64,000 bases of DNA from NCBI GenBank assembly GCA_965202585.1, contig OZ241829.1, positions 6,572,001 through 6,636,000 of the forward strand, in the 5' to 3' direction. Shown here piece after piece: positions 6,601 through 63,780 of the stretch (the stretch's first letter is position 1; each line of letters begins with the position of its first letter). A program made the translations under genes and the position numbers. Source of the DNA: Thalia democratica (Eukaryota). Under the pieces are notes generated by a model. The model searched no databases. It was not told the origin of the DNA and saw only the letters and a list, made by a program, of their open reading frames with translations.

Positions 6601-7280
6601 CTGACGTTGATCTTCGAGTACAGGACCCTCTTTTCTCCAAGTGTCAGGTTGGGGAAGGTTTCGTTCTCAGGTGTGACGTCACCGGAACCCTCTCCTGATC
6701 CTGAATATTCTGAAAACACTTCGGATGATCCCTGCAGTTTCGACACGATCTCATTCGCAGTGTCTTCCAATGCGGCCGATACTGGAATAAAAATATTTTC
6801 TGCAACTGTAATCTGATTTTGTTGTTTAAACAAAAGAATAGTTTTTGAGTTATTTTTTTTAAGTCAAACTAAATTTTTGAAATTTTCATGTACGTTTTGT
6901 TAGTTGTTTACTCTGTTAACAGTTTAAAAGTTTACATTTGTCAATTTTGAATTATACATCATTTTTCTAATACTACGTTAGAGTTAATACAAATACTTGA
7001 ATATATTTTAAAATTTTCAATTAGTTAAAAGTTTAGTTTTTTATCTGGTGTACGAATTTTTTAAGTTTTAGTCTCATACTGGAATAGTCGTAACGTAACA
7101 TTTGTTTGAAAAATATTGAGTAAAAACTTCTAATCTAATTAAACCTTTCAAGTTGAAGTGAATTTTGCTGGAAGTTCTCGTGAATGGCTCGTTGTAAGCG
7201 TACTCAATTACCATTCCTTTGTGCTGAAGAAAATTAAAGATTATTAAAAAGTTCAATACGTTCTTTACTTTTATGTTAAA
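3643..7280. repeat. Segmental duplication, downstream copy (direct orientation, about 17.8 kb offset)
   Basis: Roughly 90% identical by eye to 21475-25127, with sharp boundaries at both ends. Confidence 0.95.
4105..7223 (-). pseudogene. 5'-truncated duplicate of the 3' end of the giant gene (pseudogene or alternative terminal cassette)
   Basis: Exons 7145-7223, 6590-6781, 6171-6323, 5629-5847, 5244-5362, 5169-5183, 4630-4747 and 4105-4150 (counting the micro-exon), all with intact splice sites. There is no start codon or upstream exons. Exon 5244-5362 is 119 nt versus 114 nt in the source copy, causing a frameshift and TGA at 5283-5285. Confidence 0.75.
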
Positions 7281-21835: not shown

Positions 21836-21841
21836 TTTATT
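21836..21841 (-). terminator. Candidate polyadenylation signal AATAAA
   Basis: About 125 nt downstream of the stop codon and conserved in the duplicate (3977-3982). Specificity is low in AT-rich DNA. Confidence 0.35.
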
Positions 21842-21964
21842 AGTGTTTAAGCGAATTAGTATAAAAATAAAATCTTAAAAAATGTTTTATCAGTATTTCT
21901 TTTGTATTTTCCAAGCTTGGCCCTTTATAGCGTACATTGAATTTTTTTAAAGTTTTGTTTTTTT

Positions 21965-22010
21965 TCAAGCTTGTCCGGCTTCTGCAGCTGCCGGAGAGTA
22001 ACTTCCTTGC
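21965..22010 (-). CDS. Terminal coding exon: cytoplasmic tail KQGSYSPAAAEAGQA*
   Basis: TTACAG acceptor at 22011-22012, phase 2 match to the TM exon, TGA at 21965-21967. Confidence 0.88.
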
Positions 22011-25000
22011 CTGTAAAAGTAAAACGTTATTGAAAAAAATTAAAATGAAAAACTAGAGTTTTTAAGAACTTTGTTTATGTGCAAACACTAGCTAAAAACT
22101 TCAATACAAAAAAATGCACAAAGATATAGTTGTATAAATAGATAGAAAATACGTTGTAAGCCACATTTACCATCATGAAAGCCTTTAGCTAAAACAATGA
22201 TAACAGTTTGCTTTAAAAGATTTTAAAACTTTAAGCTTCTTTTATTCGACAAATGTTCTTGTATGCACATTTATAAATACTACTTACAACGTCTTATTGA
22301 TTACAAACAACTCAATTTGTAGCTTTTACGTATGACGTCACAAACAAAACAAAATAAACAATTGTAAACAAAAATAATAAAAGTGTATAACTCACTATAT
22401 AGATTTGATATGTGACATAACATATATGAAACAATAAATAGTTATTAATATCAAACGTGTATATATTTATATACAAATAAACTCACTTTGTAGCTTTTAT
22501 GTATGACATCACAGACAACGCGACAATGGCGACCAATAGGGCGACAGCAAGCGCGATCAGCAACCAGCCACTAGGTGGACCTACTGTTGACGGCTCCTTA
22601 AATCCTGTGAATTTGTTTGGATGTTACTTTTTGTAATTATAAATTATCAAACAAAAAAATTGTAGTACTAGTTTAGCTAACTTTTCTTTTTTGTTGATAA
22701 TAACAAGTTGTTATTCGATTAACTTTAAAGGGAAAAACTAAAATTTATTTTCTATATGTTTAGTAGAAAAGTTGTTTTACATTGTTTATTTCATTCTAAC
22801 TATTTCCTTATCACAGAAAAGTTAAGGTCCGTATACTCACTATCATTTAAAATAAAGAAAAAAATAGTATACTAGTACACTAATTTTCTTCTATGGCAAA
22901 AAAAAAAGAGTTTTACGTAAATTAGTAACCATTAAATGAAACAAAACAAATAATTTTATTCATAACTTTTAACTACATTGTATACGAACCAACAAATTAG
23001 TTTACTGTTTTACTTTTGCACGTATCTGCTGCAAAAAAAAAAAACACACGAAACGTATTAAACAGTAATTTTTTTTCAAATAAAACAAACTCACTAGTAG
23101 TGACGTCAGCTGTCGTGTTCAACTGCTGAGTGGTTATTTCAGGAACTGTGGTGGCCTCAGGTATCGTAACTGGTACGGTTGGTTCGACTTCAGTCCAAGG
23201 TGGTAGGACTGTTGGAAAAACAAGCAATTAGAAAAAGTTAAACAAAGCTTTTGTACAGAGAGAAACTTAAATTAAACAGTTTTTTGTCATATATTTTTGA
23301 ATAAATCTATAAGCTTAGTACTTCCAAAAACTGTTTTCACAAGTTTTAAGTTGAACCAAAAAGTGTAAAACCAATCGTTTTAAAATTATGTTTTTCTGAT
23401 AAATAACTAAAACTTTATTTCAAATACGACAATAATTAATTGTTTTTTATGTTGTTTTGTTCACAACTCACCGTATATCTGAGTGTCGCACAGTTCGATC
23501 GTGTCACCGATTTCCGCGCCCGCCGCCGCCGCCGCCTTCACTTTCCGCATGATCGCCCTCGCCTCCTGGTGGTGGTTCCTCCTCGTCACGATCTTCAGCA
23601 ACACTTCCTCGCTCGACCTCAAAGCCGTTCTGTAGCTCACGAGCGATCTCATCGATCCGGATCCCTCGCCGGATCCCTCCCCGGATCCTGGTTGAATGTC
23701 GAATGTTATTAATTTAAACGACGTTGTAAACATAATTATGTTTTAGATAGTAGATGTTATGGAAGGAAAATTGTTTACAGGCTGTTGCTTGTACTATTAG
23801 TTTTATCACAGTTTTGTTATTAAGCTGTAGGAGTATTTTTTATTTGACGAAAGTGAGACTTGTGAATACTCTTAAGTTTTTGCAGTATGTTAAACAACTT
23901 TAAAATAAAGTTAAAGAAAATACTTGTTTAAATTTTTTCACGTTTAAACAACCACGTTTATTGGAATAAAAATGAACTTGGAATTTTTGCAGGAAATATG
24001 GAAAACAAACCTCCTTTGTCGACGTATTCGCACGAACTCATAGTGAGATCGCAGTAGAGCTTGATGAAGCCCGCCCACTCGTCGTAATGATGATCGTGCA
24101 CTTCGACGCTCTCAACGTCCAATATCAATCTCAACTCTTCCAACGATTCCAGCAAGTCCGTTTCTGTGGAAAGTAATTAAATGTAGCTCGAAAGTTTTGA
24201 AAAAATATGTGACAAACATGCTCAAGTTCGCATGGCTTATAAACGTTCTCTAAAGTTTTTTTACTAAAAAAGTCTTTTACACAGTTCACATCGGTGATAT
24301 TTTGATCTGAATGACGAAGTATTTCGAAATAATTGAAAAGATTTTGTGCAATCACCGATTTAAAACATATTCATAGCTTTATCAACAACGCAAGTTAAGT
24401 GTGAACTCCAACTCGTAGTTTCAAAGTCAAACCGTTCTTGTATCTGATGTTGATCTTCGAGTACAGGACCCTCTTTTCTCCCAGCGTCAGGTTAGGGAAG
24501 GTTTCGTTCCCAGGTATGACGTCACCGGAACCTTCACCTGATCCTGAATATCCTGAAAACACTTCGGATGATCCCTGCAGCTTCGACACGATCTCATCGG
24601 CAGTATCTTCCAATGCGGCCGATACTGGAATAAAAAAATATATTTTCTGCAACTTTAATCTGATTTCGTTGTTTAAACAAAAGAATAGTTTTTGAGTTAT
24701 TTTTTTTAAGTCAAACTAAATTTTTGAAACTTTTCATGTACGTTTTGTTAGTTGTTTACACTGTTAATAGTTAAAAAGTTTCCATCTGTGAATTTTAAAT
24801 TATATATCATTTTTCTAATACTACGTTAGAGTTAATACAAATACTTGAATATATTTAAAAATTTTAAATTAGTTAAGAGTTTAGTTTTTATCTGGTGTAC
24901 GAATTTTTAAAGTTTTAGTCTCATACTGAAATAGTCGTAATGTAACTTTTGTTTGAAAAATATTGAGTCAAAACTTCTAATCTAATCAAACCTTTCAAGT

Positions 25001-28000
25001 TGAAGTGAATTTTGCTGGAAGTTCTCGTAAATGGCTCGTTGTAAGCGTACTCAATTACCATTCCTTTGTGCTGAAGAAATTCAAAGATTATTAAAAAGTT
25101 CAATACGTTCTTTACTTTTATGTTAAACAGTATACATAAATGACGGTCCTACTCAAGTAGTACTGATGTAGTCAAGTTATATTTTTATGTAATTATTGAA
25201 ATAATTCCTTAAAGTTTAAATTTAATTTTACAACTATGAACTAACCGAAGGCAAAGTTTCAGTTTTGTTTCCACCGAAATCAATAAAATCGTCACTGATC
25301 CATTTGTCAATGACGTCCTTTGTATTTTCCTCTTCGCTTATAAAGTACCCATCATACACTGAAAATTTTAGTAGGTTGATTATTTGTAGTCTATATTTTC
25401 TAAATTATGCAATTAAAACGTAAGAGTTTATATATAAAACTAAGCCACTAGGAACCAGCACATACAGATATTCATACAACTATAAACAATAACAAATAAA
25501 ACAAAACTCACTTTTATCAGGAATGAAAGGTCCAGGAACTGCAAAAAATAAAAACATCAAAAACTTGTTCAAAGCTTTAAAAAACAAAACAAAAAATCAA
25601 CACTAGTTTAATAACAAGTTTACAAAAGCAACGTTAAAGTAGCAATTATAGTATTTTAATTTGGATTGAAATGTTAACAATATTTATATATATATTTGCT
25701 TCATATTCTAACTATGATGTCACACTCACCTCTGACGTGCACCGGTGACGTGATGTCGTCAAAACCCCCTGTGACGTCATCATCCTCGTCCTCCGTGATC
25801 AGCCACAGGTTGATGTTCTGCTCTATGACGTCATCGTTCGCAGCGTCGCCGGTGGAAACTCTGTACGTCACGCTTGGCTTGTCGGCGTCGATTTCGAGAG
25901 AGTCGATGACGTAATGCGAGAGACCCGATCTCTCGTCCAACAGCTTCTTGCCCTGAAAGTGAAATTAATGTTTTAGCTTATAGTATGATTATACATTGAA
26001 TTTAGAGAGAAACTTTTTTACTTTTGGTTGATTTTAAATTTTTAGGAACTTTAATATTGTGTTCTTTTTAAGTATTTTACTCATACTTCATTTTGTTAGA
26101 CAACTAAATTGTTAATTAGTTTGTACTTTTTGTACAGCAGCTTAAGAACTTTGTTTATGGCTTAGTTTTATTTGTCAGTGAACCAAAAATATTTTAATAA
26201 AATTTATTATTTAATTTAGCAAGGTTCCAAAAAAGAAAAACCCGGTAAAAAAAGTTTTTACGAACTATAACTTACAGTTTCTATTGAAGCATATTTCTCA
26301 ATAGCTGATGGCTCAAACCGAATTTCAATATCAAACCTCCTAAGTGCTGTAAAAATATATATGTTTTCAGTAAAAGTAAAGTTAGTTCAACTTTTTACTA
26401 AGAACACATTGATTGGCTGTAGGATAATAACAAAGCAAAATTTTACTTTTGTGTAATAAGTTATAAAAAAAGTATACTCCTTTTAAAGCTTGTATGAAAA
26501 GCTTCAAAACATAACTCGTTGTTTTGAAAACAAGTATCATTGTTTACTTTGCTAATGATAATACATCTACCATTTTATTTAAAACTTATACAAGAAAAAA
26601 ACAGTTTCAATCTTTATTTTGTCACATTACAAACCTTGCACGGTAGAATCCGGGTACTTTTCGTTTACTTCAACCGGATCGAATCCGGGAAGAACGTTCA
26701 AATGAGCAAGCAGTTGATCTTCTTCTGTGTGTTCGAAGTAAATCACTCCGTTGTTGATCGCAGGGTCCATCAGCAAATACTTGTCGATCTGAGCAATTTA
26801 TTTCGTTATTTTGTTGTTTAAATCGCACTACTGATGAGAGAGTACCACGATAATTTAACAGTTGTAATGTTGTTGTTGTTAAAACTTTTATCATTTAACA
26901 ACATACGCTTATGAGACTTAAGGTATCAAGACATGTTGTCTTGGAAATTTGTTTAACCAATGTAACTAAAGATGCACGAAAATAATAAAGTAAAAGTCTC
27001 AGCTTGAGTTGTATATATAAATCTAAAACTTAAACATGACTAAACAGTTTTAAATTACAACATTCATCCTAAAACACTAGAATAAATTTTACAACAAACA
27101 AACCTTTTCAACGTATTCGGCAAGCACAAGCGGGTCTTCGGGCTCGTACAGTTTCTGAAGATCAGAATACTCGAATTCGGGGATTACCGCGGATATGATC
27201 TTCTCCTTGACTATCTTCTTGGGAGTCGTGACTTCTTGTGTTGTAATTTCGACCGTGGTCGTTGGCTCAGGTGTAGTTGCTTTCTAAAATTTAGAAATTT
27301 TATAAACTTCAGCTGAATAGAAGTATTTTAGTTTTACTTAGATACATTCGGTCTGAAAAACACACAATTAATTAAAAACTTAAACAATAGGTTTTTATTA
27401 GGTAAAAACGACTTACAAATTTTCTTGTTATACTAACCTGCGTTAAAACACTTAAACTATCAAAAACACAAAACATAAACCTAACAAAAAGCTTAACAAC
27501 TTGTACTTTATACTTAGTACAAGGTCAGCCCTATGGGAAAAAATAGATAAATTAGTCACTAAAAAAGTTCAATTAAACTATAGTTATACATTTTAATCAA
27601 ACAAAACTAACAGTAGTTATTTCCACAGTTGTCTCTTCCACAGTAGTAATTTCAGGGGTTGTGGGCTCAGGAGTGGTTGTCGTGGTAGCTTCAGGAGTCG
27701 TTGTTGGTTCAGGTGTTGTTTCAGGTTTTGTGGTAACCTCAGGCGTTGTTGTTATGGGTTCCGTGGTAACCTCAGACGTTGTTGTCATGGGTTCCGTGGT
27801 AACCTCAGGCGTTGTTGTCATGGGTTCCGTGGTAACCTCAGGCGTGGTTGTCATGGTTTCAGTGGTAACCATGGTAGTTGTTGGTACGGGTTCAGGAGTT
27901 GGTGGTGTTGGCTCCTCAGTGGTTACCTGTGAATGAAAAAATAAACAGTATTACTTATTTAAAAAAATTAGATAACAAAACTATTAAAACTTCGTTGTAT

Positions 28001-49000: not shown

Positions 49001-52000
49001 CTGCTAGTTGCGAGATTCTTGATTCCATCAGAAGGAGTTACTTCTATCAGATATTCAACGTTCGGATCCAGGTTTTTGAATGTTACTTGGGCTCTGTTTG
49101 AAATGTACATTCGTTAAACAACAGTTATAATGTTAAGAAATCGACTAAACTATAACACACAAGTACAAAGGTAATAAAAGTAAATTTCAAACTTTTTGCG
49201 TTATATAAAGATGCAAGAAAGTATAGAATGTTATACTTCTGTATATGTTAAAAATGGAGATATAACAAAAAAAAATTATAGTGAGTCAAAAACAGCAGAA
49301 AGGACATAAAAAATTTCCGGTGTGAGTAAAATTTGCAATAAATCTTTTCCTAAAAAAACTCAACAAAACAAACTTGTCAGCATCGACAGCGTCCGTCCAT
49401 GTGGTTGATTCTGGCGTGAGTAAAGTTTCCGTTTTAAATTGCCACCCCGTGATTGACACGCCCCCTTCCTGGAATACTTGTGCCAGGTAGATATGGTCCC
49501 GGTCCAGCACGTCCCAGCCAACCGTGATTGAAGTGTCCGTCGTTTCCAGCTCCCTCAGTTTCAGCTTTTCTATAAAAAAGTGTATTGTTGTAAAAGAATT
49601 CCAATTTTAAAAGGACTTGACAGAAACATTAAGCGCGTAAAATTTTTAAAAGTTGAGTATAAAAAATTTCCTACCGAGATAGATGCTTTCAGTGTTTTCA
49701 TAGCTGACGGTCTTCCTGTAAACAGCCATGATTGTGACGTCATAATCCCGATCAAGATCGAGATTAGTGAACTGGAACGAGTTCTTTTCTCCCACCAGTT
49801 TCTGTTTCACCACCGCTGAATCTCCAGGTGCGGAATCTCTGTGGAGGTAAAAAGTTTGTGTAAGGAAAATATAAATAAAAGATTATGGGTATAGATTTTA
49901 AAGCTGTGATAAGTAATACAAGTTATGGATTTATATTTTTAAAGTTAACTATACACATTTAAACAAACAAAAGTTTATAATACAGTTTATTATTAATTAG
50001 ACAAAAAAAAAACTAAGATGAAAAACTGCAATAAAAACAGTATTTATTAAAAATTAGTTTTATTAGTTAACCCAGTTGAACTCTTATTTAGTTGTACATT
50101 AGGTGGACTAATAAATTTAAATAAAATTACCCCTTAGAAATTGTGAGGTCGTATTGAATTGCGTTCTTCACGTCTGTCCATTCGACATTTACTGAAGTTC
50201 CAACTTGTGACAACTCAATATCAACTTGTGGTGCTGTAATGTTTTACGTAAAAATAAAAATAAATATGAAAAGTTGTTAACTGTTTAGAACAGTTAAGAT
50301 AATTTTTTTTTCTTAATTACACTGATAAGTTTAAAAAACCCATCGTATAGTTAATTTCTGTGTTGTTTACAAATCTAAAAGAAAAAATTCTTAGTTATAA
50401 GAAAACTTCTAAGACATATTTTATTAAACACTTACTTCTGGAAACTTTAAATTCTTTGGAATCCGTCCTGATTCCGTTAGAGACGCTGGTAACCACAATC
50501 TTGTACTGCTTCTGGTAAGGCTCGGTGAAGTAGAACGTGGTACCCTGGTTTTCGCGCCTGTCAATATTTTGTAAGTGTAAAAAGTAATACTAAAATAGTT
50601 TTAACTGTTTAACATATATAGCGATGTACTGGACCAAGCTTTATTTTATAAGACCCAGGTCCGGCCAATTTGATATTAAAAAATCTTGATTCTTTTTATA
50701 ATATGTAGGTCGGGTAGATAAGAAGTTGTAAATCAATATTTGAAAACCAAAAATATACTTGTTAAAGTTTACAGAGATCGAAAAGATATTTACGTAAACC
50801 AACCCTGCTTCGACCCTGTTGACCTGTTGAACTCCGTCAATATAATAGTTGATTGTGACGTCATAGTAGCTGACTTTTCCCTCCGCGGGAGGTTGGAACC
50901 TCACTCTCAAATTGTTGTCTTGCGTGATTCTCACATTTGCTCTCTCGATTGCGTGAGGTACTAAAAATAGATGATAATATAAGTTGAACTGATGAATATG
51001 AATTAGGAGACATTACTTGTTTTGATCAACTTACCCCAGCTTGCACGTATTTTGTTTTGCTTTTCATATTATTTTAAAGTATAAACCACGTTTATACTAA
51101 GTATTTAATTTGGTTGTAAACACAAAGGTACAACAGCTTTATTAAATAAAAAACAACTCACCAGTGGAGAACCTGAAATCTTTTTCGGGACCCTCCTCAC
51201 CCCTGATGTAACCATTGACAACCATCAAATAATTTTCGCCCGGGGAAAGTTTATCGAACGAAGTTGCAACTTCTGCAGTCTCGTTTGTCACTTGTACTCG
51301 TTGCTGAATTATTATGATTGTTTCAATTTTATAATTTAAGATTTTATATAAAATATAGTAGACACTTTTACTCACTATAAGATAACTAAACTGGTTTAAA
51401 AGTAAAATTTGACGTATGTTTTGTTATGATATAAAAAAAGAAACTTTTTATTATTATTTACTACAAAGGTTTTAAAATCTCTGATTACATCTTTTTTTTT
51501 CAACCAACTAACCCTCCTGACAAGACCATTTCCTTCCACTAGTGCAAACTTGACCTCGTCAAAAGTGAAATTCTCATTAATAGGAACTTCTACGTCAACT
51601 GTGACGTCAGTGGCGTTTATTATGACGTCAACAACAGAAGGAGTGGGTTCTGTGAGAAGTATAAGTTAGCTCCTGCTTTTTGTTTTACACGAAAACCTTT
51701 GCTTTAAACTTGTGTACTTTGTGCTTGTCTGATGCTATCAGTTACTATTTTATTATATATTTCTTTCTTTTCAAAAGTTTGAAGTAGTCATTTTGATAAT
51801 ATTATCAATTTTAACTTGCAACGACTTGTAAAGAACGATATAACCAATAAAATAAAACAAAAAGAGGTTAGTGGTTAAATAATAAACGAACTCATAGTGA
51901 ATGGGAATTCGAAGCTCTTGGCGTTTCTCTGTTTAAAGCTGATTGCATCAAACTTGGCAATGTAATCTCCTCCAGGGATCAGCATGGGATCGTCGAAAGA

Positions 52001-55000
52001 CACTCTCAATACTTCGTCATCAGTTGTCGGTTTGAGGGTCTAAAGGAAAGTAGTTGAATAGATAATGCAAATAATTGTAATATTTTAGAAACAATAGTAT
52101 AAAACTTTGTTACTAAAAAAGAAGTCAAAAAAGTTTTATTGCTAAATTCATAAAAAGTTTCCAAAGCTTTTGGTAAAAATATACTTTTTGTCAAAATAAT
52201 GAAACTAGTTTATAAAACAATGGTATGGTTATATTTAGAAAGTTAAATTAAAAAAGTTAAAAGTTAAAATTAAAGTATACAAACTCACAAAAATATTAAC
52301 TTCAAAACACTACATCTACAAAACTCGATTCAACTTTTGTTTCAAGTTTCTATGACAGACTTAATATAACAATTTTAGTACTTCTAAATTTGTTTTTTTA
52401 TAGATATGTACATATACTGTTGAGTTACAAACAGTAAGGACAGAAAACGACAACTAACTATTACTCCAACCTTACAGACACATTTCTGCTTCCATGTAAT
52501 GTAGGCAAAGTAGTATAAAAAGTTATTAATACATGTACTTAAGTTTTTATAAATACTCAATTATTGTTTTAATTGTTAAGGTGTATACACAAACCTTTTT
52601 TGTATCTACTTTTTTTAAGAATCAGTTTTTAACTAACAAATAGGATATTTTTGGCTATAGTTTTTAAAACGTAGTTATACTATAAATTATATTCTTAATA
52701 AAAGCTTTAGTTATATATACTTCTTATAGTGTAACAAATTATTAAAATATGTACTTAGCTCATGTACTTAAGATATTTTTAAACATTTGAATATTGTTTA
52801 AAATATTGAAATGTGTACATAAACTTTTTTGTGTACCAACTTTGCTTAAGAACTAATTTTCAACTATAAAGTTGTATACTTTTTTCCTGAACTTTAAAAA
52901 CGTTTTTATACCAGAAATTATACTTTTGATAAAAGGTTTAGTTGTTTATACTTCTTATGATATAAAAAACAATTTTTTTTATTCAAATATACAGATTTGA
53001 TATATATATTTCAAAACCTTGGAATCGAAGGCGACATCCGAGTTGTTCATCTTCACCACTACCTTCAGCGTGTCAACCAGCCCCTCCGGTTTCCTGAACT
53101 CCATGGCAACCGAGGTCGCCGTGGTAACCACCTCGGACAGGTCCGTAACCGGGCGGGGCGCCACCACGCCCAGGTAGCTGATCTTGTCGCTGCTGACGTC
53201 ACCGATGTATGACGTCACGCTTGCCTGGTAACGCTCGCCGGGCACCAGTCCCCCCACCTTGATGGTCGTCATGGTTTCCATGGCGGTGATGTTGAACCTG
53301 AACGTCTTTGTTTCGAAGTCAGCTGAAAATAAATAAAGTTTTAAAATAATTAGTTCTTAACAATGTATTGTGATTTGATTTTTATTAAATAATTGTGAAA
53401 ATAATTTTTATTGTGAAAATTTATTTTTAAATATGTTGACATTTGGATTTAAGTTACTCTTTGACCTTTCAAAATGAGTTGATTTTTTTCATTTAATGAT
53501 AAATTACCCTGGTACTAAAAATTAAAATAATAACAAATGTTATTCAGGGTATGTTTTTTAATTATAAGAAACACACAGTTAGATTGCGGATTGAGTATCA
53601 TCTCGTACGCGACAACAAAAATTATCACTAGATATTATCAAGCAAGTTTTTATGACAATATACTGCCGATGAGTTGTTTACAATAAACGTGTCTGTGATG
53701 CCCGAAAATAAAGTTTTTTTATTATAATGTACGCAAACAACTCACAATTAGATTGCGGTTCCAAAATCATCTCGTATCCGTCAACATCTTCCTCGACCCT
53801 GCCTACGTCAGCTATCATTTCTCCTATGACGTCAGAAGCCGTCAGTTCCAAAAACTTTGGCTTCGGTGGCAACTCTGTGACGGAAATGAATATAAAACTT
53901 GCTTTTTTAATAAAAAAAAAGCTTTTTTTTTATTGAAGGTTTGTTTCGAATCAGTTTATGATTAGTTGAAGATATAAAAACAGCATTAACAGTTTAAGTA
54001 AAACTTACGTTTTAATGATTTTTTAAAACTCAAAAAGAACTTTACGAGTTTTATAACCACAAATTAAAGCTTAAAAGTATTTCTCATGACTAAACAACAT
54101 TATACACCAAATTTATCAGCCTGCAATATACTATAATTGAGATAGTAAAACTTGAGGAAAACATTAAAAACTAATATAAGTAAACAAACTGAGTCTCGCG
54201 TTGAAGGTGGCCGGTTCGCTGTTCCTTCCGTTGCTGGAAGTTTCTATTGTGACGTAATAGAGTTTTCCCGGTGACAACCCCTCGTCGAAATTCACTCGTA
54301 TTTTAGTGACGTCATCACCGGATGACGGAATGATGTCTTTTGATTGGATGGGGTCGTCGCGTGATTCGCTCCACACATAACATCTTAAACAAAATTACGT
54401 CATGAGGATTATTATTATAATTGCTTTTCAGTTTTATTTGATAGTAAACTTACAGAAAATGCTTATTACTGTAATTTAACACTAACCCACGCATAGCATC
54501 ATTGGTAAATGTACTTACCTAAAACACTGTATTACTTTTTTCAAGCATTAATTTTGTAGTTAAAGCTTGTTATGTACTAATAAATATGTTTGTTAAAGTT
54601 GGAATATTTTAATTAAGTTTATAACTGCTGGTCTAAAGTTTTTAAAAATATTTAAAAGGTGATTAAACAACACAATAAAAGTTTTAAAAACAAAAAGATC
54701 TATTAAAAATGTCTGATGACCATGAATTAAAAGTTACTTTAAAGTGAACTTAGTTTCCAACCAAAATGTATTTTAATAGAACAAACCGAAAATATTTTAG
54801 TTAAAATATTCATTCCATAGATTACATTGTAAGCGAATTAAATTTGTTTATTCAATGATACACTTACTTGTAAAATTCTACAACTCCTTCGTCTACGGGT
54901 GTGAATTCAACTTGTATTTCCCTCAATGTAGTTTTCAGTGTTGCTTTTTCAACTGCTGTTGGTTCTGTTTGAAAAAAAGAAGACAGTTTATACTTGTGCT

Positions 55001-58000
55001 TTTCAACACACAAGTATTTCAAACTAAGTTAGATTCAATAGACTAATGAAAACTTTAGGTGTTTACTTAAATATACATTAACTAAGTTATCTTTTTTTTT
55101 TCTTTTTTAGTTATTGCTTAGAGTATATTTAAAAATTGGTTCACCTTAAAAATTTAGAAACTATTGGAATAAACTAAACATATTTGTTATTTATCTGATA
55201 TTTACTATCTCCTTGTTACAGGTCACTAACTAATTGTATCAACGAAATCGTTAGATTCTCCTGCTTTTTCGTCAACAAAAGGAACAACTTCTGCTCTGTA
55301 GATTTCTCCTGACACGTAAGGACGATCGAAAGATGTCTGCAGTGTGGATCTGGAATTTAAATAAGGCTATAAGGCTCATACCAGTATCATAAAAATAAAT
55401 ATAGGTACGAGTTAAATGCGCACATATATTTTAAATTATTTAGAGTAGTTATTACTTTTATAATAAATTATAACACAAAATGATTTATCAAAAAAATTAA
55501 AGATTTTGTTATTATATATCCCTATAAGGTAAACTAAGTATTTAAAACCAAAACATTGTTTCTTTTCAGAAAATTATTTCTTTTACCTATAATTGAGAAA
55601 CAAGCTCGTATCAGAATTAAACACAACTTTATAATGCATTACAATCAATTTATTCTTACAAAGTCTTAAATTAGTATTTTTTATTTCCACAAGACAATTA
55701 TTATTTGAAGCTAAAATGTTAAAAAAAACCTATAAGAGTTTACGTTTTTTTTACGTACTTGTACAAACTAAATCAGCATACTGATAACAAAATTCATGTA
55801 AAAATTACCTTGATGAGTTGAGTGTTTGGACTTCTTGTTCGACCTGCTGATCCGACGAATACAGCGTCACTCTGTATGACGTCACAGCGAAAGTCGGCGA
55901 GGGTTGGAAGAAAAGTCGAATGAAGTTCCTAGTGGCAGTCAGTTTTCCAGATGGGACCGGTTTCGATGAGTAGAAGTCTGTAGAATTTATGGAGTAAGAA
56001 ATTAACTTAATAAGTAGTTTTTAAACTTTTTTTTTTATTAAATAAAAGGTAAAGATATAATGTTTTTCAGTAAAAGTCGACTTTAATCCTGAAATCACGA
56101 AAAATACGTTAGAAATTTACTTTTAGTATAGTATATATAAGTTGTATATTTTCATTTGAATTTTAAAAACTCTTATACAATTGAAATACAACAACTAATG
56201 GCTAAAAAATATTTTTGTTAACCCACCGTGTTTAGCTTTGAATTTCTCCGAAACCACCGACTTGTTGCCAACCGAAACAGTTTCTACTGTGACGTAATAA
56301 TCATCTTCCTCTGGATTTAATTTCAACCCGTCTATTTGGAATACAAACATCCGAGTCCGCTGCTCGAAATCGTCCATGTCCACAATCAGGGATTTCCCCT
56401 CGCTTGAAACCACAAAGTGCTTGTACTTGGACTGGGAAGGAGGGAAGAATTTTCCGTGTATTTTGGTAAAGTCGGCCTTCGCCATCATTATCGACACTGC
56501 TTTTGGTTCTACAATCGAAGAAAAAATGTTTGTAAAGGAAGAGCAGGTTATAGATATTTGTTCAATGTTTTTTTTGCAATTTCAATATTTCAATCAATAC
56601 ATTTTGACCGTTTAAGAAAAAAAAAATCACAGCGGGAAAATTATGCTCTAAGCAACTCAAAACCAAGTGTAGCTACAATAAGAAAAACTTGAGTACTTTA
56701 AGAGTAACGACGAAAAAACACAAAACGAATCAAACCGAGATCGAAGCTGATGGTTGCAGGTTTGCTCTTCGCTTCATTGACCACGGTTGTGACTGTGACG
56801 TCATAACTTTCTCCTTGCACCAAATTATCAACCGTCACGCTTGACTGATCACCCGGAACGTCGATTCTCCTCGCTTCCCCGTCACTAGGTGTCAGTGTGA
56901 CTCGGAAAGAGTCACGTGGGAGGTCGGGAGAAAGGTTCCAACTGATTTTGGCTGTAGTCTTGCCAAGCTCCACCTTCAGATCATCCACTTTTGTTGGAAT
57001 GGCTGCAGAAGAAAAACATTGTAAAAGATAAATCACTTACAAATAGATATTAATTATATGTTTTATGAAATTGTACATGTTCAATAAAGGTTTTTATATA
57101 GTTAAATAATTTCATTATTAAGTAGTATGCATTTAGAAAAAAAAATATATATACATTGATTAAAACATATATGATGAATTTTAATGAAGAAAAAAAGTTT
57201 TGCGAACTCGAGAACAAAAACGAAGTTTAAAACCTTTACCTCAGAGATAAAGCAAAACAAACTAAACGCGTGTCTTCTTAATAGTTAAATCGAAGGTGTA
57301 AAACTTTAACCTGATTTGTGTACATACACTTAAAACAACAAACTATTAAAATCAAAACTGCCCAACTCACCGGATTCGACCTGCAAGTCGGTGGAAACGA
57401 ACTCTGAGAACTTTCCGTCGCATCCGAGACCCCTTATTTCGACGTTGTACACCTTGGAGGGTGTGAGTGGGGTTTTGAAGGTGACGTCATAATTGGCTGG
57501 TTCCGACGCGGCAACTTCAATCTGTTCGTATATATCAAGTTAATTACATTGTTCAAATACAAGGTAAAATCCGTGTTTTAATTTCTTAAAAGTATATTAG
57601 ATGAACCTGTTTGTGAATTTTATTTTTTAAATGAATTCACTAAGCGTTCGCAAAATGTTCTTTATTTTAGGTGTAAATTCAAATAAAAATTTCACATAAA
57701 TTTAAAGATGTTTGCTTTGTAATAAAAAATGTAAAAATTATCATTATTTTCAGTGAGTTTTTATCAAACACGTGTTAGAATGTAAACTGGTTGCTTCTTT
57801 ACTTATTCCTCAAAAAATTTATCAACGTTAATAAACATAAATACACACCTCTTCAACAGTGTTGCCTTCCAGCACGAGTCTCGCCTGATGAGGTTGTTTC
57901 GATGCTGACGTGAACCTGATGTTTAGTCTGTTCGAACCCGTGAAGCTGTGATCCACCATCTCCGCTAAGTGAGGATCTACACATTGTAGTTTGTAAGGTT

Positions 58001-61000
58001 TCGTATAAAAACCAAAACTATATTAGTTAAAAATGATTTATTTTAATGCGTAAAATTATAATTGTTGGTTAGCAGAAAGCTTAAAAAAGCTTTTAAAACT
58101 CTGAAAAAAGATACATGTGGTGTGACCTAATTTCAACATATAAGCTTAAAACAATCTTTTTTAGTTTTTTTAACAGTGAAGTACAAAAATTTATAACTAA
58201 ATGTTAAAAAAAAACTAACAAGTGCAGAATTCTCTGGTCATTTTTATGTTTCTGTCGTCTATTTTGAAGTACATGTTCAGTATGAACACCTGAGCAGGTT
58301 TCAGAAGATCAGACGGGCAGAATACAGTTTCTGTGTCCTCGTCAACTTGGAAAACCTGAAAAAAAATAAACTTCTAGTTTAGCTGACCGTATCATAAAAC
58401 CACTCTATTAGTAAGAATTAAAAGAATTTATACTTTAAAAGTTTAGAAATCCCTGAGAAAAAACTTTAACAAAAAACTTTTTATACTAATGTACACCATT
58501 TCAAAAGTATCATTTACAAACGTTCTCTTATTTCAAAAAGTCAAACGATTGTTTTCACGTTGAAATTGTTTCGAATATCAACTGCGTTCTATAAACATAG
58601 TTTGATGACCAAATATTCAGCATTGCAACGTACGCTTTGACTGTTTTAGCTTGTCAAAAGTTTTAATCTTTTTAAACTGTAAAACTGTTTTATTGATGTT
58701 AATCTTTTCATTACAGCTGTAAAGTACTTTTTCTTTTATTTGCGTATCTGAACACCAACACAAAATAAATAACGTGTTAAAGTACAACCAATGATTTTTT
58801 TACTTAAACAAAAATTCGGAAAACTGCTTGGAAACTGCTTCTACCTTTTTCAAATAGTAAAATAAAAGCATTTTAAGAAACAAACCTTTACGACGTCACC
58901 ATCTTCTGTTGTCACTTCAACTGTGACGTCAGTAGCATCGGTTGGCATGGTAACCTCAATGGAAGCTGACCCGTTGCTATGCGGGGTTGCTACGATGTCA
59001 GCAGGTGCTGATGGGGCTGAAAATGAGGAAGATGATTATTTATTCAATAAATATTTCAAAACATTCTAAAGTCAAGGTAAAAATAAAAATTAAAAAATAA
59101 AAAAGTTTAGTTGTTTATTCTATTTCAATATCTAAGTTTTCAGAAAATAGTATTTTTTTAATAACCAAATTTAACTATTTTAAAATTTGTGACATAATAA
59201 ACTTAAAGGAACGCAAATAAAATACTTTATCTATACTATTATTTTCGATAAAAAAACTAATTAGTCAAACTAACTGGGTTCGACGAGGAATGTAACGGGG
59301 TCGCTGCTGACGTAGTAGTCGACGTAGTCGTTGTCCCTGGTCGTCACCGTGGTAACCCTGTATGTGACGTCAGGATCCGCCCTGAAGTCCTTCAGTGTCG
59401 CTTTAAATTCCCTCCTGTTTTCTACGTCATCTGTGGTTTCTGTTGGATATATTATTTAATACATTCGTTGAATTAAAACTATTTACTTACTTTTCTTGCT
59501 AACTTTAACAAAGTTGAATGCCAAAAGTGTTTAGAACTTACTTTATTTACAATGAATTAAATTTTTTTTTTATTATTTGTCATTATAAGTACATTTTTAA
59601 TAACTTAATTTTTTTTTAGCTAACTAAAAGATGATAATGTTTTTGATATTTACAGTTTAGGTTTTTAAAGTATTTACACTACTAGATAACTAAAGTTTTC
59701 ACAAGTATACTAGAAATAACTTAAATGCTTAACAAGTAACTGTAAGAGTACGTTTGTAAAAAAAGTTCTCAATTTATTTAGCTTATGTTGTATTTTTATG
59801 TTAAACATATCAATGTTACTATATTAGTATTTGTTTTATATTGTTAAAATTGTAAAACTATTTTTTTTTGTTTGAAATAACTTTTAATTCAAACAAGTGT
59901 TTAAAAAAGACTAATTACTTAACAAATATATGAAAATTAAAAAATGGCTTTGAAAAATTTTTGTGCACAACTAAACTTAAACAGTATCTTAATTCTATTT
60001 ACTTGACTATTTAAACTATTCTTTTAAACTAAGTTATTATCAAAAAAAAAAAAAACAAAGCTTTTGTTTTAATTTATTTTCTAAAAAGAAACGTTTTCAA
60101 AAAGCTAAAAATAAAAAATAAAAAAATTAAGTCTTTTTTAAAACACTCTGTAAGTTTCAATTCTAAACAACAATGAGAACATTTAATTATAAAATATTAA
60201 ATAATCTATGCTCAACTTTTTATATAACACAAACTCATAGATATAAGTTGCTTTAATATCCGTTAAATATTTTTTTTACATTGACTGTTATAACAAACCA
60301 ATAGTATTCAAAAATAAGTTTAGTTAAACTTTTACGAAAAAAGAAAATCAATTACAACCAACTAACCTTGACCGTAACAACTTAAAAATTCGAAATGTAA
60401 CAAACACAACAGAACAAGTTTAAACATTTGAATCTGCACTCAACATGTAAAGTCGAGAATCAAATGCAATTGAGGTGTTAGCTCACAACAAGTAGTATAT
60501 TGCCGCGGGGAACAACATAACAATAACAGTAAGGCGGCAAAAATGCGCGGTGCCATTGTTTTCACATCTTTTGTTTTTGTGTATACTTAAAAAATTGTAG
60601 TTCATAACAGCTAAGATGAGTAATTTTAATTAATATCTACTGCCATTGTAAAAAGGTGTTAAAAAAAACTTAAAGTTCATATTAGCTTATTGTAAGAAAT
60701 TATAATTAATATACTATGCCTTTGTACACACACATTTTGTTATTTTATGTCAAATTTTTCAAATTGCAGTTAATATAGGCATGATGTGCTAAGATTTTAT
60801 AAAAAAATGCTATTATATCCAGATCTTTTGTTTTAAAAACATTTTTTTTTCAATTTAAACTTGAATTAAACTCAATTGATAAAATTTTAACTAGTATTTT
60901 TTAGCTTCGATATGTAATTGAATTCAGATGTTTTGCTTTTGTGTATACTTAAGCAAATGTAGTTCATTTAAGCTTATCGAGCTCATACTATTAATTAATA

Positions 61001-63780
61001 ATTTCAAGCCTTTGTATGGTTTAAACCCAAGTAAGAAATGTCGAATTGCTTATATATTACCATTGTGTTTAGATGTTTTGTTTAATAAAAATTTGTTTAA
61101 TTTCAGTTCAACTAAGCTGTGTGGGTCACATTTTAATTAACGCTCTGTGTCTTGGTTTAACTTGCATGCAAATAAGATGTCGTTGTATTCAGTTGTTTTT
61201 TGGTTTTTCAATAGTTTTGCAACTTGCAGTTCATTAAAGCTCATTCTAATTGATATTTTCGACCTTGGTGTAATGTACACACAAGTAAAAAAAAATCCTA
61301 ATTGGTTTTCAGTATCATTACTGCATGTTATTTTGCTCAATTAAATTTTTCTTAATACAATTTCGATCAAACATACTGAGAATTTTTTACTAGATTATTG
61401 TTTTTTTTTTTTCGTTTTTATTGTGTCTTCATAAACTTACAGTTTTAACAAAACTAAGTATTGGTTTCTGTTCTTTTTATGTTGTACTTTTAGTATAATT
61501 CAGTTCATCATAGTTTAAAGTAACAATGTTGGCAAAATTTAGTTTAGTTAAAATTACTATGACGGTATACATTCTTAGAAATTGTGAAGGTTGTTTAGGT
61601 GATATGTGTATTTATTTTTTAGTCTAATGAAAAACTCTGTAGCAAACATAATATTGTGACGTAGTCACACAAACTGCAACATTTTTGTTTAATATTCAGA
61701 AAAAAATGTATATTTTCCTAAAATTAGTCTTTTTTTTATTAAAAAGTATCAGATAAAGATTTTGTAAATAATCTTTAAGTACTTTTTTGTTGACATCTTA
61801 AGCAATGCGAGCAAGACTCACATAAACTGTTTAGTATTTGCAAGTGCTTATAACCTTATGCATAATTGATTTTTACTGTGTTAAAAAAGATTTATTTTCT
61901 GAACACAAAATTCAGCTGATCGTAGTTGATAATTTAAAACAGAGAATGAAAATTTAAACAAGAGATTTTCAGGCATAGAAAGAGAACAAAACTAACTAGT
62001 TTTTACATTAAAAACTTATAAGTTATTTACTTGGATTTTCTAAACATAGTTAAGTCTGACTGTTTTTTGCTTTTACTATAACAATTTAATTTGCAAATTT
62101 AGTCTACATAAGTCTACAAACGTTTTAATGTGCGAACTAATAACTTACTGTGTTAAAAAAACTTCTTAAATATAAAAACTTTATTTTTTGTATAAGTCTG
62201 TTAAGTATTGCATATAAAACACTTTATTCGTAACACTCCTTAAAGTATGCTTTGTAATTTTCTGATTTTGAACATGCATGAAAGTAATTTGCTACATAAT
62301 GGCACCAATTTTAATGTGAATATACATTTGCAGATTTATATTCTCCTATGTTTTTAATGTTAAAGTATGTGGAATATTTTTAAACTATGAGATGAAGTTT
62401 TAAGGAAAGTCGTTTTTAAGTGTTTTCCAAGGTTATAAATTACTATAAGTTTTGGCAAAGATTGAAAAATAACTTTGGCAATTATGCAAATTTTTACGGT
62501 TTTTAATTCGTGATTTGAACACCTTTTATCAATTTTGCCGATCTTTCAAATTGTTGCGAAGGCAATTTTGGGTTTACAAGAATTTTCTTTCACTTTAAGA
62601 CCAAATTTGAAAGTTAAAATTTGATCATATTAATACCAAGTCACGGTAAAAATTATGAAAAGAAAATACTAATGCAACTTCTAACTTTTAACTTGAAAAT
62701 TCATAATAATACTTTATAAATTATTCGTAAACTAATATTATAGTGTTGTTAGATAATTTGCCACATATATGCAATGTTTTAAGTGTTTAAATTTCGAAGT
62801 TGCATGAATTTTTGTTGTTTTCACATTTTGATTAAATTGAAAGTGATAATTTCTATAGTTAAAACGTTTTTTTATTTTTCATATACTACTGAAAACTTAA
62901 ACTACACCACACGAACAAATATAAACAAGACCGTAGAAACAGTTTCAAAGCATTAACTACGCGATTTAACTACAGTTTTGCATTAACACTGTTTATTAAT
63001 TTAAAAAAAAAGTAAAGTTAAAATTTGTAAAATAAAACAACAATTCACTACTAATTCACCCACCTAAATTAAAAAGGTTGTAGAACGTAGATTCTCCAGT
63101 GTTCGTGTCTTCGATTGTGCAGTTGAAACCGTCGACGAAACCCTTGTCAACTGTAAACGTCACGAACGTTTCGTTCAACGTGACGTCATAATGCGGTTGG
63201 AGAGAAACTGAACTTGCTTCGAGCGGTCCTGTTAATAATAGATTTTTTTTACTGCTGAAATTATAAGAATATTTCATTTAGAAAACAATGGTGTACCAAA
63301 GTGCGTAATTAACAAATTTATACTTAATTGGAAAAGCACAGGCTTTTATGTATAAAGACTAACTGTTTTGAGTATGAACTTTTAAAGTTTTCATACTTTA
63401 TGATAAAAGTAAATAAATAACTTAAATATAATAAATAAATATTTGTATACATATAACTCAAATGGGTGTGAACAACATAAGGTTCTTCGCTGTACAATAG
63501 CTATGTACAGCAAAATATTTAAAAATGCATAAATTCCAAAAACTAACTGAGGTGGGTGTGAATTACTAGAGGTTCTTCACTGTATGTCTTTCCAATGGCG
63601 TATTTAACTTGGAACACCAGTTTGTTGCCGGGAAGATCCGGAAGTGATTCCTCGAAGAACCGGTAGTTTGCGTGTCCACGGATGAGCGAGGAATCGATCA
63701 GGTAAAATCCGTATTGTTTGTGCGCAGCGTGCAATGTGAACCTGCGAGAAAGATTGTCCGTTAGTAAATAGTTGTTATTT
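21965..63780 (-). CDS. Giant multi-exon single-pass membrane protein, 5'-partial: >=25 FN3-like repeats, Pro-rich hinge, SEA-like modules, Ser-Gly clusters, mucin segment, TM helix, short cytoplasmic tail (about 4,400 aa in window)
   Basis: 85 GC-elevated exons with GT-AG boundaries and matching phases, open frame to TGA at 21965-21967. Exons 5'->3': 63548-63741 (or -63780), 63064-63228, 59275-59439, 58886-59016, 58220-58355, 57849-57976, 57371-57521, 56736-57002, 56227-56508, 55809-55977, 55231-55349, 54868-54964, 54190-54383, 53746-53874, 53018-53322, 51892-52039, 51513-51649, 51162-51303, 50804-50960, 50436-50557, 50131-50233, 49675-49838, 49374-49569, 48984-49093, 48446-48626, 48043-48164, 47646-47757, 47253-47413, 46833-46983, 46468-46583, 45953-46133, 45310-45443, 44757-45011, 44074-44212, 43555-43679, 43145-43361, 42791-42915, 42439-42547, 41954-42129, 41571-41733, 41137-41252, 40594-40747, 40039-40178, 39773-39878, 39317-39471, 38818-38974, 38535-38680, 37895-38264, 37519-37649, 37202-37344, 36583-36748, 36188-36328, 35453-35599, 35190-35293, 34825-35035, 34403-34572, 33861-34087, 33477-33653, 33041-33183, 32754-32825, 32322 (or 32298)-32443, 31927-32108, 31424-31603, 31152-31285, 30700-30897, 30143-30378, 29522-29737, 28847-28963, 28413-28560, 28079-28242, 27612-27926, 27104-27283, 26635-26788, 26276-26346, 25730-25952, 25512-25538, 25246-25358, 24992-25070, 24433-24624, 24011-24163, 23472-23687, 23095-23208, 23014-23028, 22487-22604, 21965-22010. 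Confidence 0.92.
22487..22604 (-). CDS. Transmembrane exon
   Basis: RFKEPSTVGPPSGWLLIALAVALLVAIVALSVMSYIKAT: about 23-aa hydrophobic helix followed by basic residues. ACAG acceptor, GTGAGT donor. Confidence 0.9.
23014..23208 (-). CDS. Thr-rich juxtamembrane stalk exon (23095-23208) and 15-nt micro-exon (23014-23028, TDTCK)
   Basis: VLPPWTEVEPTVPVTIPEATTVPEITTQQLNTTADVTT. The micro-exon sequence and splice sites are conserved in the duplicate (5169-5183). Confidence 0.75.
23472..26788 (-). CDS. Membrane-proximal SEA-like modules with two more Ser-Gly clusters; includes 27-nt micro-exon 25512-25538
   Basis: In-frame exon chain with FSGYSGSGEGSGD (24433-24624) and GSGEGSGEGSGS (23472-23687). 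The micro-exon VPGPFIPDK has TTGCAG acceptor and GTGAGT donor, phase 1-1. Confidence 0.8.
27104..28242 (-). CDS. Thr/Pro/Glu-rich mucin-like segment (3 exons)
   Basis: TTIAMTTQKETTFVDTTMETTHVATTT.., VTTEEPTPPTPEPVPTTTMVTTETMTTTPEVTTEP.., KATTPEPTTTVEITTQEVTTP. Confidence 0.88.
27730..27870. repeat. Coding 33-bp tandem repeat (11-aa MTTTPEVTTEP), 4 full units plus a partial unit
   Basis: Units beginning gtggtaacc at 27730, 27763, 27796, 27829 and 27862. Confidence 0.9.
28413..30378 (-). CDS. Further SEA-like modules (4 exons)
   Basis: Exons 30143-30378, 29522-29737, 28847-28963 and 28413-28560 join in frame (e.g. TVAVIGKMDVSLDP..GDVVTAHFKLDIK; RLFTAEFEMVIP..VESIHFNRV). The fold assignment is inference. 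Confidence 0.6.
30700..30897 (-). CDS. Exon with Ser-Gly cluster (putative glycosaminoglycan attachment sites)
   Basis: FLGSGNSGSGMEGSGFEGSGSSDPEGSGYYG: SG dipeptides with acidic neighbours, as in perlecan, agrin and syndecan GAG sites. Confidence 0.8.
31152..37649 (-). CDS. Region of several SEA-like / ferredoxin-fold modules (16 exons)
   Basis: Alternating beta and helical patterns, including the SEA-typical FNVKIEFTF..DLFKDPDSEYFKQQKEDIEQM (34403-34572) and VRIDVDREFFFE..SKNELSEQLNDLLKTFKSGLFKSVEFLRF (31424-31603). The domain identity of several modules is inferred, and no canonical GSVVV cleavage motif was seen. Confidence 0.65.
37895..38264 (-). CDS. Exon encoding polyproline hinge followed by first SEA-like module
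   Basis: GTFPTLPPPPPTISPPPPIPTMTPQPTTPPHISTRFPPPVPPPISPPLPPPRR, then NYVMVVRV..NEKESSKRKELENDVTKSF. Acceptor TTCAG at 38265, donor GTAAAA at 37894. Confidence 0.85.
38535..63780 (-). CDS. FN3 array portion of the giant gene (47 exons; about 25 complete fibronectin type III-like domains plus one partial at the window edge)
   Basis: Repeated units of about 85-100 aa with phase-1 introns at domain borders, usually two exons per domain. FN3 hallmarks are visible, e.g. AIPTKVDDLKVELGKTTAKISWNLSP..DNLVQGESYDVTVTTV (56736-57002), GGLVPGERYQASVTSY (53018-53322), TGLRPGHEYYIKI (43555-43679), GLYPGNTYKIKI (41137-41252). The style resembles PTPRB/PTPRJ or tenascin ectodomain FN3 repeats (family knowledge, not a search result). 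Confidence 0.88.
60367..60427 (-). CDS. Candidate internal alternative first coding exon B encoding signal peptide MFKLVLLCLLHFEFLSCYGQ
   Basis: ATG at 60427, hydrophobic core, small-residue cleavage context (CYG-Q), strong donor AAG|GTTAGT at 60366. Phase 1 splices in frame to exon 59275-59439 (G+AA = Glu). A CAG acceptor lies 6 nt upstream of the ATG. Confidence 0.6.
60440..60556 (-). CDS. 38-aa uORF, or alternative signal-peptide exon A (MAPRIFAALLLLLCCSPRQYTTC|CELTPQLHLILDFTC*)
   Basis: ATG in strong context (aaaacaATGG) at 60556, Leu-rich h-region, internal donor T|GTGAGC at 60486 (phase 1). If unspliced, TGA at 60440-60442 falls 12 nt before ATG-B. Confidence 0.4.
   Translation of the reverse strand: MAPRIFAALLLLLCCSPRQYTTCCELTPQLHLILDFTC

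Follow-up and report, generated by a model that had tools for sequence, protein, structure and literature searches.

The Gene and Its Recurrent Word

The stretch analysed here is a 64-kb window of the Thalia democratica genome (C5:6572001-6636000 of 801.8 Mb, with no N). It carries a single minus-strand gene, here called the host gene, whose coding exons are dotted with one exact palindrome of eight letters, TGACGTCA. There are 40 perfect copies in the window, compared with 0.58 ± 0.68 (maximum 2) in dinucleotide shuffles of it. A splice-aware model places 34 of these in the spliced coding sequence (CDS) of the host gene, and two further copies (5250 and 6674) lie in exons of a duplicated cassette derived from its 3' end. 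This puts 36 of the 40 inside coding exons, those of the one gene being spread over 40 kb. The other four (43365, 43729, 22333 and 4474) are not exonic, and a 14-kb spacer has none. A preliminary description of the window had given these positions, with only about four copies outside exons, none in the spacer and two retained in the exons of the cassette. On rescanning, every one of the 40 positions proved to hold TGACGTCA, and the rest of that account was borne out. The whole 8-mer is the unit and not some shorter core, because both the T and the A flank are present at 40 of the window's 47 GACGTC cores.

The gene was modelled from the sequence by dynamic programming with codon log-odds, AG/GT sites and phase continuity, and splice-site matrices were added in a second pass. 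Some exon borders may be off, and one spurious exon of 24 nt was dropped. The model has 83 exons (13,017 nt), to which a last exon at about 22011-21966 was added by reading the sequence, for a total of about 4,340 residues. G+C is 47.7% in the exons and 24% in the introns. The product is predicted to be a giant FN3-repeat, mucin-like membrane protein. About 25 FN3 repeats are followed by a proline-rich stretch and by repeats without a Pfam name; next are a mucin-like exon rich in Thr and Pro and stretches rich in Ser-Gly, and the chain ends with a transmembrane helix and a tail of 15 residues. The exon at 56737-57000 matches Pfam fn3 at 43.5 bits (cut-off 25, E = 3.8e-11) and the Dep-1-type Fn3 at 32.6 bits. 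The other exons score below the Pfam fn3 threshold because each domain is split over two exons. An Rfam scan of the window on both sides of 44707-44744 returned no known RNA family. The two large features are as follows.

21966-63741, minus strand: host gene, 5' end beyond the window; dynamic-programming model, last exon read from the sequence
3643-7280, minus strand: segmental duplicate of the 3' end of the gene; paralogue of 21475-25127, 91.9% identity over 3.68 kb, introns included

The duplicate covers about the six last exons with their introns and lies some 18 kb downstream, with the 14-kb AT-rich spacer between. The copies of TGACGTCA are listed below without strand. The peptide that each encodes is in brackets, and L031 to L039 are orthologous contigs from related salp lineages.

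63181-63188: exon 2, D-V frame (YDVT)
59365-59372: exon 3, D-V frame (PDVT)
58924-58931: exon 4, D-V frame (TDVT)
57482-57489: exon 7, D-V frame (YDVT)
56796-56803: exon 8, D-V frame (YDVT, FN3 F strand)
55877-55884: exon 10, T-S frame (VTS)
54307-54314: exon 13, D-V frame (DDVT); kept in L031
53827-53834: exon 14, D-V frame (SDVI); kept in L031
53210-53217: exon 15, T-S frame (VTS); kept in L031
53194-53201: exon 15, D-V frame (GDVS); kept in L031
51623-51630: exon 17, D-V frame (VDVI); kept in L031
51602-51609: exon 17, D-V frame (TDVT); kept in L031
50856-50863: exon 19, D-V frame (YDVT)
49735-49742: exon 22, D-V frame (YDVT)
48549-48556: exon 25, D-V frame (SDVT)
47352-47359: exon 28, D-V frame (SDVI)
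47302-47309: exon 28, T-S frame (MTS)
46084-46091: exon 31, T-S frame (VTS); kept in L032
46044-46051: exon 31, D-V frame (DDVK); kept in L032
44982-44989: exon 33, D-V frame (TDVT); kept in L032 and L033-L036
44929-44936: exon 33, T-S frame (VTS); kept in L032 and L033-L036
44183-44190: exon 34, D-V frame (DDVT); TGATGTCA in L033
43729-43736: intron, 49 nt upstream of the exon 35 acceptor
43365-43372: intron, 3 nt upstream of the exon 36 acceptor
43224-43231: exon 36, D-V frame (GDVI)
41960-41967: exon 39, D-V frame (RDVR), 6 nt from the donor
40638-40645: exon 42, T-S frame (LTS)
39428-39435: exon 45, D-V frame (SDVS)
37995-38002: exon 48, D-V frame (NDVT)
36619-36626: exon 51, D-V frame (VDVK)
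34957-34964: exon 55, D-V frame (NDVI)
34918-34925: exon 55, D-V frame (DDVT)
25826-25833: exon 75, D-V frame (DDVI); kept in L037, L038 and L039
25772-25779: exon 75, D-V frame (DDVT); kept in L037, L038 and L039
24517-24524: exon 79, D-V frame (GDVI)
23101-23108: exon 82, D-V frame (ADVT), 6 nt from the donor
22333-22340: last intron, within a decayed duplicate of the exon 83 end; TGATGTCA in the live exon
6674-6681: duplicated cassette, paralogue of 24517
5250-5257: duplicated cassette, paralogue of 23101
4474-4481: duplicated cassette, paralogue of 22333 (exon-end copy in intron)

Enrichment beyond Protein and Codon Usage

The 34 CDS copies divide into 28 read as xxT-GAC-GTC-Axx and six read as xTG-ACG-TCA, with none in the frame that would place a stop, which is the frame usage that the preliminary description reported. 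Permuting codons or shuffling dinucleotides leads to an expectation of 0.47 copies in the CDS. Permuting synonymous codons, so that both the protein and its codon usage are kept, gives 1.73 ± 1.28, with a maximum of 8 in 2000 trials. In the strictest null, swaps are made only between synonymous codons with identical neighboring bases, and the expectation is 6.7. The preliminary description had proposed a second code in exons that constrains codon and amino-acid choice, and had named codon-aware nulls as the place where the enrichment could vanish. The excess persists in all of them, including the one that keeps amino acids and codon usage (34 versus 1.73), and the part about codon choice stands. 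The part about amino acids does not follow from this gene. The D-V dipeptide is 1.8-fold in excess (59 versus 32.6 expected; V-D, 35), and this is no proof of bent amino-acid choice here since the FN3 consensus itself includes D-V-T.

The filling of the available places is close to complete in the D-V frame, where 28 of the 34 places permitted by the protein have TGACGTCA and 1.4 would be expected. In the T-S frame, it is 6 of 13 (0.31 expected), and for the two frames together, 34 of 47. Of the 34 permissive contexts, 29 use the codon pair GAC-GTC; of the 25 in which a flanking residue precludes the 8-mer, only 3 do so. The latter fraction is lower than the 17% expected from single-codon frequencies. 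Wherever the 8-mer is impossible the pair is not favored, so the word gives rise to the dicodon bias and not the reverse. A general preference for C followed by G across codon boundaries was considered as a cause and rejected, none being detected in the CDS.

No other 8-mer of the CDS comes near TGACGTCA when tested against the synonymous null (z = 24.8). The next genuinely enriched 8-mer is GGTTACCA (10 versus 0.5), which is accounted for by the tandem Thr/Pro repeat of the mucin-like exon at 27612-27926 on the minus strand. That exon is built of tandem PEVTTEP(M/I)TTT units and has no TGACGTCA. Near-matches of the word are not enriched. All 24 one-mismatch variants together number 16 in the CDS, versus 17.3 under the null, and there are no TRE (TGAGTCA) or PAR (TTACGTAA) sites in the CDS. 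The half site TGACGT occurs 47 times in the CDS (null 11.7); 34 of these are in the word, and those outside it are at the null level. Two more general processes were tried and rejected. Other palindromic 8-mers number 23, with 38.8 under the null, which disposes of a general palindrome-making process, and the CpG-deamination decay product TGATGTCA is not enriched in the CDS or genome-wide. Only the perfect 8-mer is favored, in an all-or-none manner.

The copies are independent sites and not recent duplicates of one repeat unit, because their 60-nt flanks are no more alike (28.4% identity to each other) than those of random in-frame positions (28.0%). The preliminary description held that the word is not one conserved peptide. 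The six T-S copies and the unrelated flanks agree with that, while the 28 of 34 copies that encode x-D-V-(T/I/S/K/R) limit it. We also observed that exons 56-74 (about 34572-26276) comprise about 3.2 kb of CDS without TGACGTCA and nearly without permissive peptides, the one exception being an unused T-S-D-V-T-L.

Conservation in Related Salps

Orthologous contigs (L031-L039) were found with three exon peptides in the marine metagenomes of the ENA, including TARA, and they represent related salp lineages. Their identity to the window is 79-95% in exons and 78-90% in introns. In 18 of 19 word-by-lineage comparisons the word is perfect, and the single difference is a change of TGACGTCA to TGATGTCA at window position 44183 in L033. 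Conservation of synonymous motif positions across orthologs was a check that the preliminary description had called for, and its outcome favors the proposal: the third codon position is changed in 1 of 57 cases within the word and in 184 of 988 elsewhere (Fisher p = 2.5e-4). For codon positions 1 and 2 the counts are 0 of 95 and 105 of 1998 (p = 0.013). Both p values are approximate since the lineages share ancestry. TGACGTCA is under purifying constraint. The duplicated cassette keeps 3 of 3 paralogous copies, which at 92% identity is uninformative on conservation.

Two observations concern copies at exon ends. In L039 (positions 440-447), a perfect TGACGTCA lies on the 5' splice site of the exon 75 ortholog, which reads GAG/GTGACGTCAT (the slash marking the junction), where the window has GAG/GTGAGTGTGA. 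Within the last intron of the host gene (22306-22342; paralogue near 4450-4485), the 3' end of exon 83 recurs with its donor in decayed form, ending in TGTGACGTCATACGTAAAAGCTACAAATTGAGTT. The live end of exon 83 is TGTGATGTCATACATAAAAGCTACAAA/GTGAGTT and has TpG/CpA there (Thr to Met in the transmembrane helix); the intronic copy retains two CpGs and TGACGTCA.

Flanking Preferences and Possible Symmetry

The fuller form of the word is approximately T-N-R-TGACGTCA-Y-A-N. A purine is found at -1 in 24 of 34 copies (71%) and a pyrimidine at +1 in 28 (82%), and farther out there is T at -3 in 17 (50%) and A at +3 in 16 (47%). At synonymous flank sites of the D-V-frame copies, T is found at -3 in 16 of 28 (7.4 expected, p = 4e-4) and A at +2 in 17 of 28 (7.5 expected, p = 9e-5). 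No preference was seen at synonymous sites of these copies beyond -3 and +2. The six T-S-frame sites show the same trend at -2 and +3. G+C at third codon positions (GC3) is 0.52 within 9 nt of the word and 0.62-0.64 farther off in the same exons. The two-fold symmetry of the flanks is suggestive rather than firm. The prior for an 8-mer being a palindrome is 1/256.

Position within Exons and Introns

The copies tend to avoid exon edges, with counts by exon quintile of 3, 11, 8, 10 and 2 (chi-square p = 0.044). Only two are within 36 nt of a donor, and none are within 19 nt of an acceptor. Acceptor and donor scores, from position weight matrices (PWMs) derived from this gene model, do not differ between exons that contain the word and those that do not (p = 0.53 and 0.81, respectively). 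Exon definition, which the preliminary description offered as one possible role, predicts otherwise on both counts and finds no support in either. Of the 27 motif exons, 20 hold a single copy. GC3 is 0.60 in motif exons and 0.52 in exons without the word, with no gradient by distance from the word, and the G+C of the flanking introns is 0.232 versus 0.244.

The introns hold 2-3 perfect copies where 0.17 are expected, whereas one-mismatch copies are at expectation (4 versus 4.3). The perfect intronic copies are all near exons or within an exon-end copy. This excess near exons is more readily explained by a signal in DNA or pre-mRNA than by one acting in translation.

The donors of this gene have a peculiarity of their own. 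Position +3 in the 83 modelled exons is T in 39 (as in GTTAGT and GTTTGT), G in 26 and A in 15, and the usual animal donor consensus has a purine there. Among the modelled exons, there is no relation between the word and the frequent T at +3.

The Word in the Genome

Genome-wide, there are 56,755 perfect TGACGTCA sites, compared to 9,487 for the reversed control word, a six-fold excess. The AT-richer neighbor TGATGTCA, which is the CpG-deamination product, is present at about 13,400 per strand, and its control at about 17,300. The published T. democratica assembly is 790.7 Mb long and has a G+C content of 25.3%, which in its CDS is about 17 points higher (PMC13746493).

For a comparison with non-host coding sequence, 30 reverse-transcriptase loci (L001-L030, about two families) were examined, and no TGACGTCA was found in their 35 kb of open reading frame (ORF). 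These retrotransposon ORFs are 24-35% G+C (28% overall), and their CpG observed/expected ratio is mostly 0.1-0.5, or 0.17-0.5 in the comparison with host exons. The ratio is 1.07 in host exons and 0.85 in host introns. This suggests that germline CpG methylation may be aimed at transposons and not at gene bodies.

Candidate machinery includes the bZIP genes of the genome (about 11 matches) and three tandem and apparently intronless DNMT1-like ORFs of 873-878 aa at G000:C1:49968705-49998371, each with BAH and a complete C5 DNA-methylase domain. There is a further DNMT1-like frame of 1360 aa on a small contig (C467:13520-23257) and a stop-riddled copy at C5:39683794-39685530. Intronless copies are odd in a genome with exons averaging about 150 nt.

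What Reads the Word

An exact, frame-independent nucleic-acid word lies over the host coding exons and determines synonymous codon choice, and we are highly confident that TGACGTCA is a real, selected signal other than protein. As to its reader, we tentatively favor a bZIP-type dimer that would recognize the word in double-stranded DNA inside gene bodies. TGACGTCA is the exact optimum of the CREB/ATF class of bZIP dimers, which need the central CpG to be unmethylated. A dimeric factor on unmethylated DNA is the most economical reader since the word is a palindrome with mirror-like flanks, is all-or-none, coincides with the CREB/ATF optimum and lies in host exons that are not depleted of CpG. 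A two-fold symmetric dimer of the CREB/ATF type would read the word on double-stranded, unmethylated exon DNA, and such binding within gene bodies might mark host exons, for example by keeping chromatin active and unmethylated, or might modulate elongation.

Several points weigh against this. The cAMP response element (CRE), which is the site of these factors, normally acts near promoters, and about 50,000 intragenic CRE sites would be without precedent to our knowledge. The genome search gave about 11 bZIP matches, showing no expansion of bZIP genes. The flank symmetry rests on 34 sites, with position ±2 lopsided (T 29% versus A 68%) and confounded by codon position. The transposon comparison covers about two families with just three permissive peptides. 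The near-saturation of permissive sites exceeds what one mark per exon would need. Finally, a palindrome cannot reveal which strand is read, leaving room for an RNA reader.

Such an RNA-level exon signal would consist of UGACGUCA in the pre-mRNA or mRNA, recognized by an RNA-binding protein (as a splicing enhancer, for export or as a licence of self) or engaged in RNA-RNA pairing. It is the somewhat unlikely but serious competitor. The word is nearly confined to the exons of a spliced gene, the odd donors (T at +3 in 39 of 83 exons) make extra exon cues plausible, and the few intronic copies are near splice sites, the L039 copy being on a donor. Classical enhancers, however, cluster near splice sites, and here the exon edges are avoided (p = 0.044), with splice-site scores showing no link to the word (p = 0.53 for acceptors and 0.81 for donors). 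Enhancers are also short and degenerate, and this word is all-or-none at 8 nt; nor would a reader of single strands call for a perfect palindrome or for flanks that are mirror-like. An 8-bp duplex is possible between any two copies, and in 4 of the 7 exons with two copies pairing is predicted (P at least 0.72), but this pairing follows trivially from self-complementarity, 20 of the 27 motif exons have a single copy, and -1 and +1 are uncorrelated within sites, which shows no extension of a duplex. Alternatively, a bias of repair or gene conversion might favor the perfect word with no function at all, protein selection only limiting where it can settle; parallels would be the way uptake sequences spread in bacteria and conversion at recombination hotspots that depend on a CRE. 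Such molecular drive would fill 28 of 34 permissive sites more easily than would weak selection acting at about 50,000 sites, and the surplus of perfect copies in introns (2-3 versus 0.17) and the higher GC3 of motif exons (0.60 versus 0.52) go in its direction. We consider it improbable. Local GC-biased conversion has left no trace, as there is no GC3 gradient and intron G+C is unchanged (0.232 versus 0.244); one-mismatch neighbors are not depleted (16 versus 17.3 in the CDS and 4 versus 4.3 in introns); transposon ORFs and the 14-kb spacer have zero copies; and conversion normally removes hotspot motifs (the hotspot paradox).

The remaining two explanations stay at the level of the protein and its translation, and both are effectively excluded. 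An effect on translation, through favored codon pairs (GAC-GTC and ACG-TCA) or an off-frame TGA serving as an ambush stop, would account for the restriction of the word to CDS in two stop-free frames and for the third-frame TGA on both strands. It is nonetheless very improbable, given that the same 8-mer is made from two unrelated codon pairs in two frames, that GAC-GTC is tied to the completing T and A (29 of 34 versus 3 of 25), that synonymous preferences reach out to -3 and +2, that there is no general C-to-G preference at codon boundaries and that an off-frame stop needs three letters, not eight. Still harder to credit is that the copies are a by-product of a repetitive protein, with shared FN3 peptides (D-V-T or Y-D-V-T-V) descended from one repeat unit with biased codons. 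The confirmed FN3 domain, the 28 of 34 copies encoding x-D-V-(T/I/S/K/R) and the 1.8-fold D-V excess do explain why this gene is rich in permissive sites. Keeping the exact protein and codon usage, however, gives 1.7 copies and not 34, flank identity is that of random positions (28.4% versus 28.0%), six copies are in the other frame and the excess is genome-wide.

The dimeric, DNA-level reading could be extended to a genome-wide mark of self, an extension that we regard as speculative and rather unlikely. A methylation-sensitive dimeric reader of the exonic word, of bZIP type or new, would license host gene bodies against CpG methylation and silencing. The silencing system would be the one that left transposon ORFs depleted of CpG in a genome that is 80% repeats and 25% G+C. 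Selection for the mark would then be strong enough to settle which synonymous codon stands at most permissive sites, and in other genes it might extend to amino acids.

Relation to Known Systems

The word is identical to the CRE, an 8-bp palindrome with a central CpG, and what is favored here is the full site, as against TRE, PAR or half sites. In their preferred purine at -1 and pyrimidine at +1, the copies may also resemble the flanks of ATF/CREB sites. Known CREs differ in being few per regulated gene and in promoters or enhancers, whereas here there would be about 50,000 exonic copies at 70-80% of permissive positions. Vertebrate duons and exonic splicing enhancers are likewise cis-signals laid over coding sequence that constrain synonymous sites. 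Those are many, degenerate and weakly enriched, in contrast to one exact 8-mer at about 20-fold over a protein-preserving null, and unlike the enhancers, the word keeps away from exon edges and shows no dependence on the strength of splice sites.

In their statistics, the closest parallels are bacterial. The DNA uptake sequence (DUS) of Neisseria, the uptake signal sequence (USS) of Haemophilus and Chi of E. coli are exact words of 8-12 letters with a genome-wide excess, use of permissive frames, an all-or-none character and enrichment beyond codon-aware nulls. They are tied to DNA uptake or RecBCD, and we know of no such machinery in animals; the salp word, by contrast, is palindromic and nearly confined to exons. 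The M26/CRE hotspots of fission yeast, bound by Atf1-Pcr1, are similar in having a CRE-like word in coding DNA and a bZIP dimer that acts on chromatin and not in transcription initiation. They differ in being hotspot alleles and not a genome-wide enrichment, and there is no local GC-conversion footprint here. Neither the full-text literature searched nor the salp or tunicate genome papers PMC5174732, PMC10686999 and PMC13746493 mention the occurrence of this word in exons.

For the annotation of salp genomes, the word can serve as a near-diagnostic marker of true host exons, and work on dN/dS and codon usage in thaliaceans will have to include it in its models. If our reading is correct, this is an animal genome with a second exact code in its coding exons, a palindrome kept by selection at tens of thousands of sites and filling most of the places that its proteins allow. 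The question of the reader would become a tractable one. It would also stand as the clearest example among eukaryotes of synonymous codons being dictated by a signal other than protein, and as a strong counter-example to the notion that silent sites are neutral.

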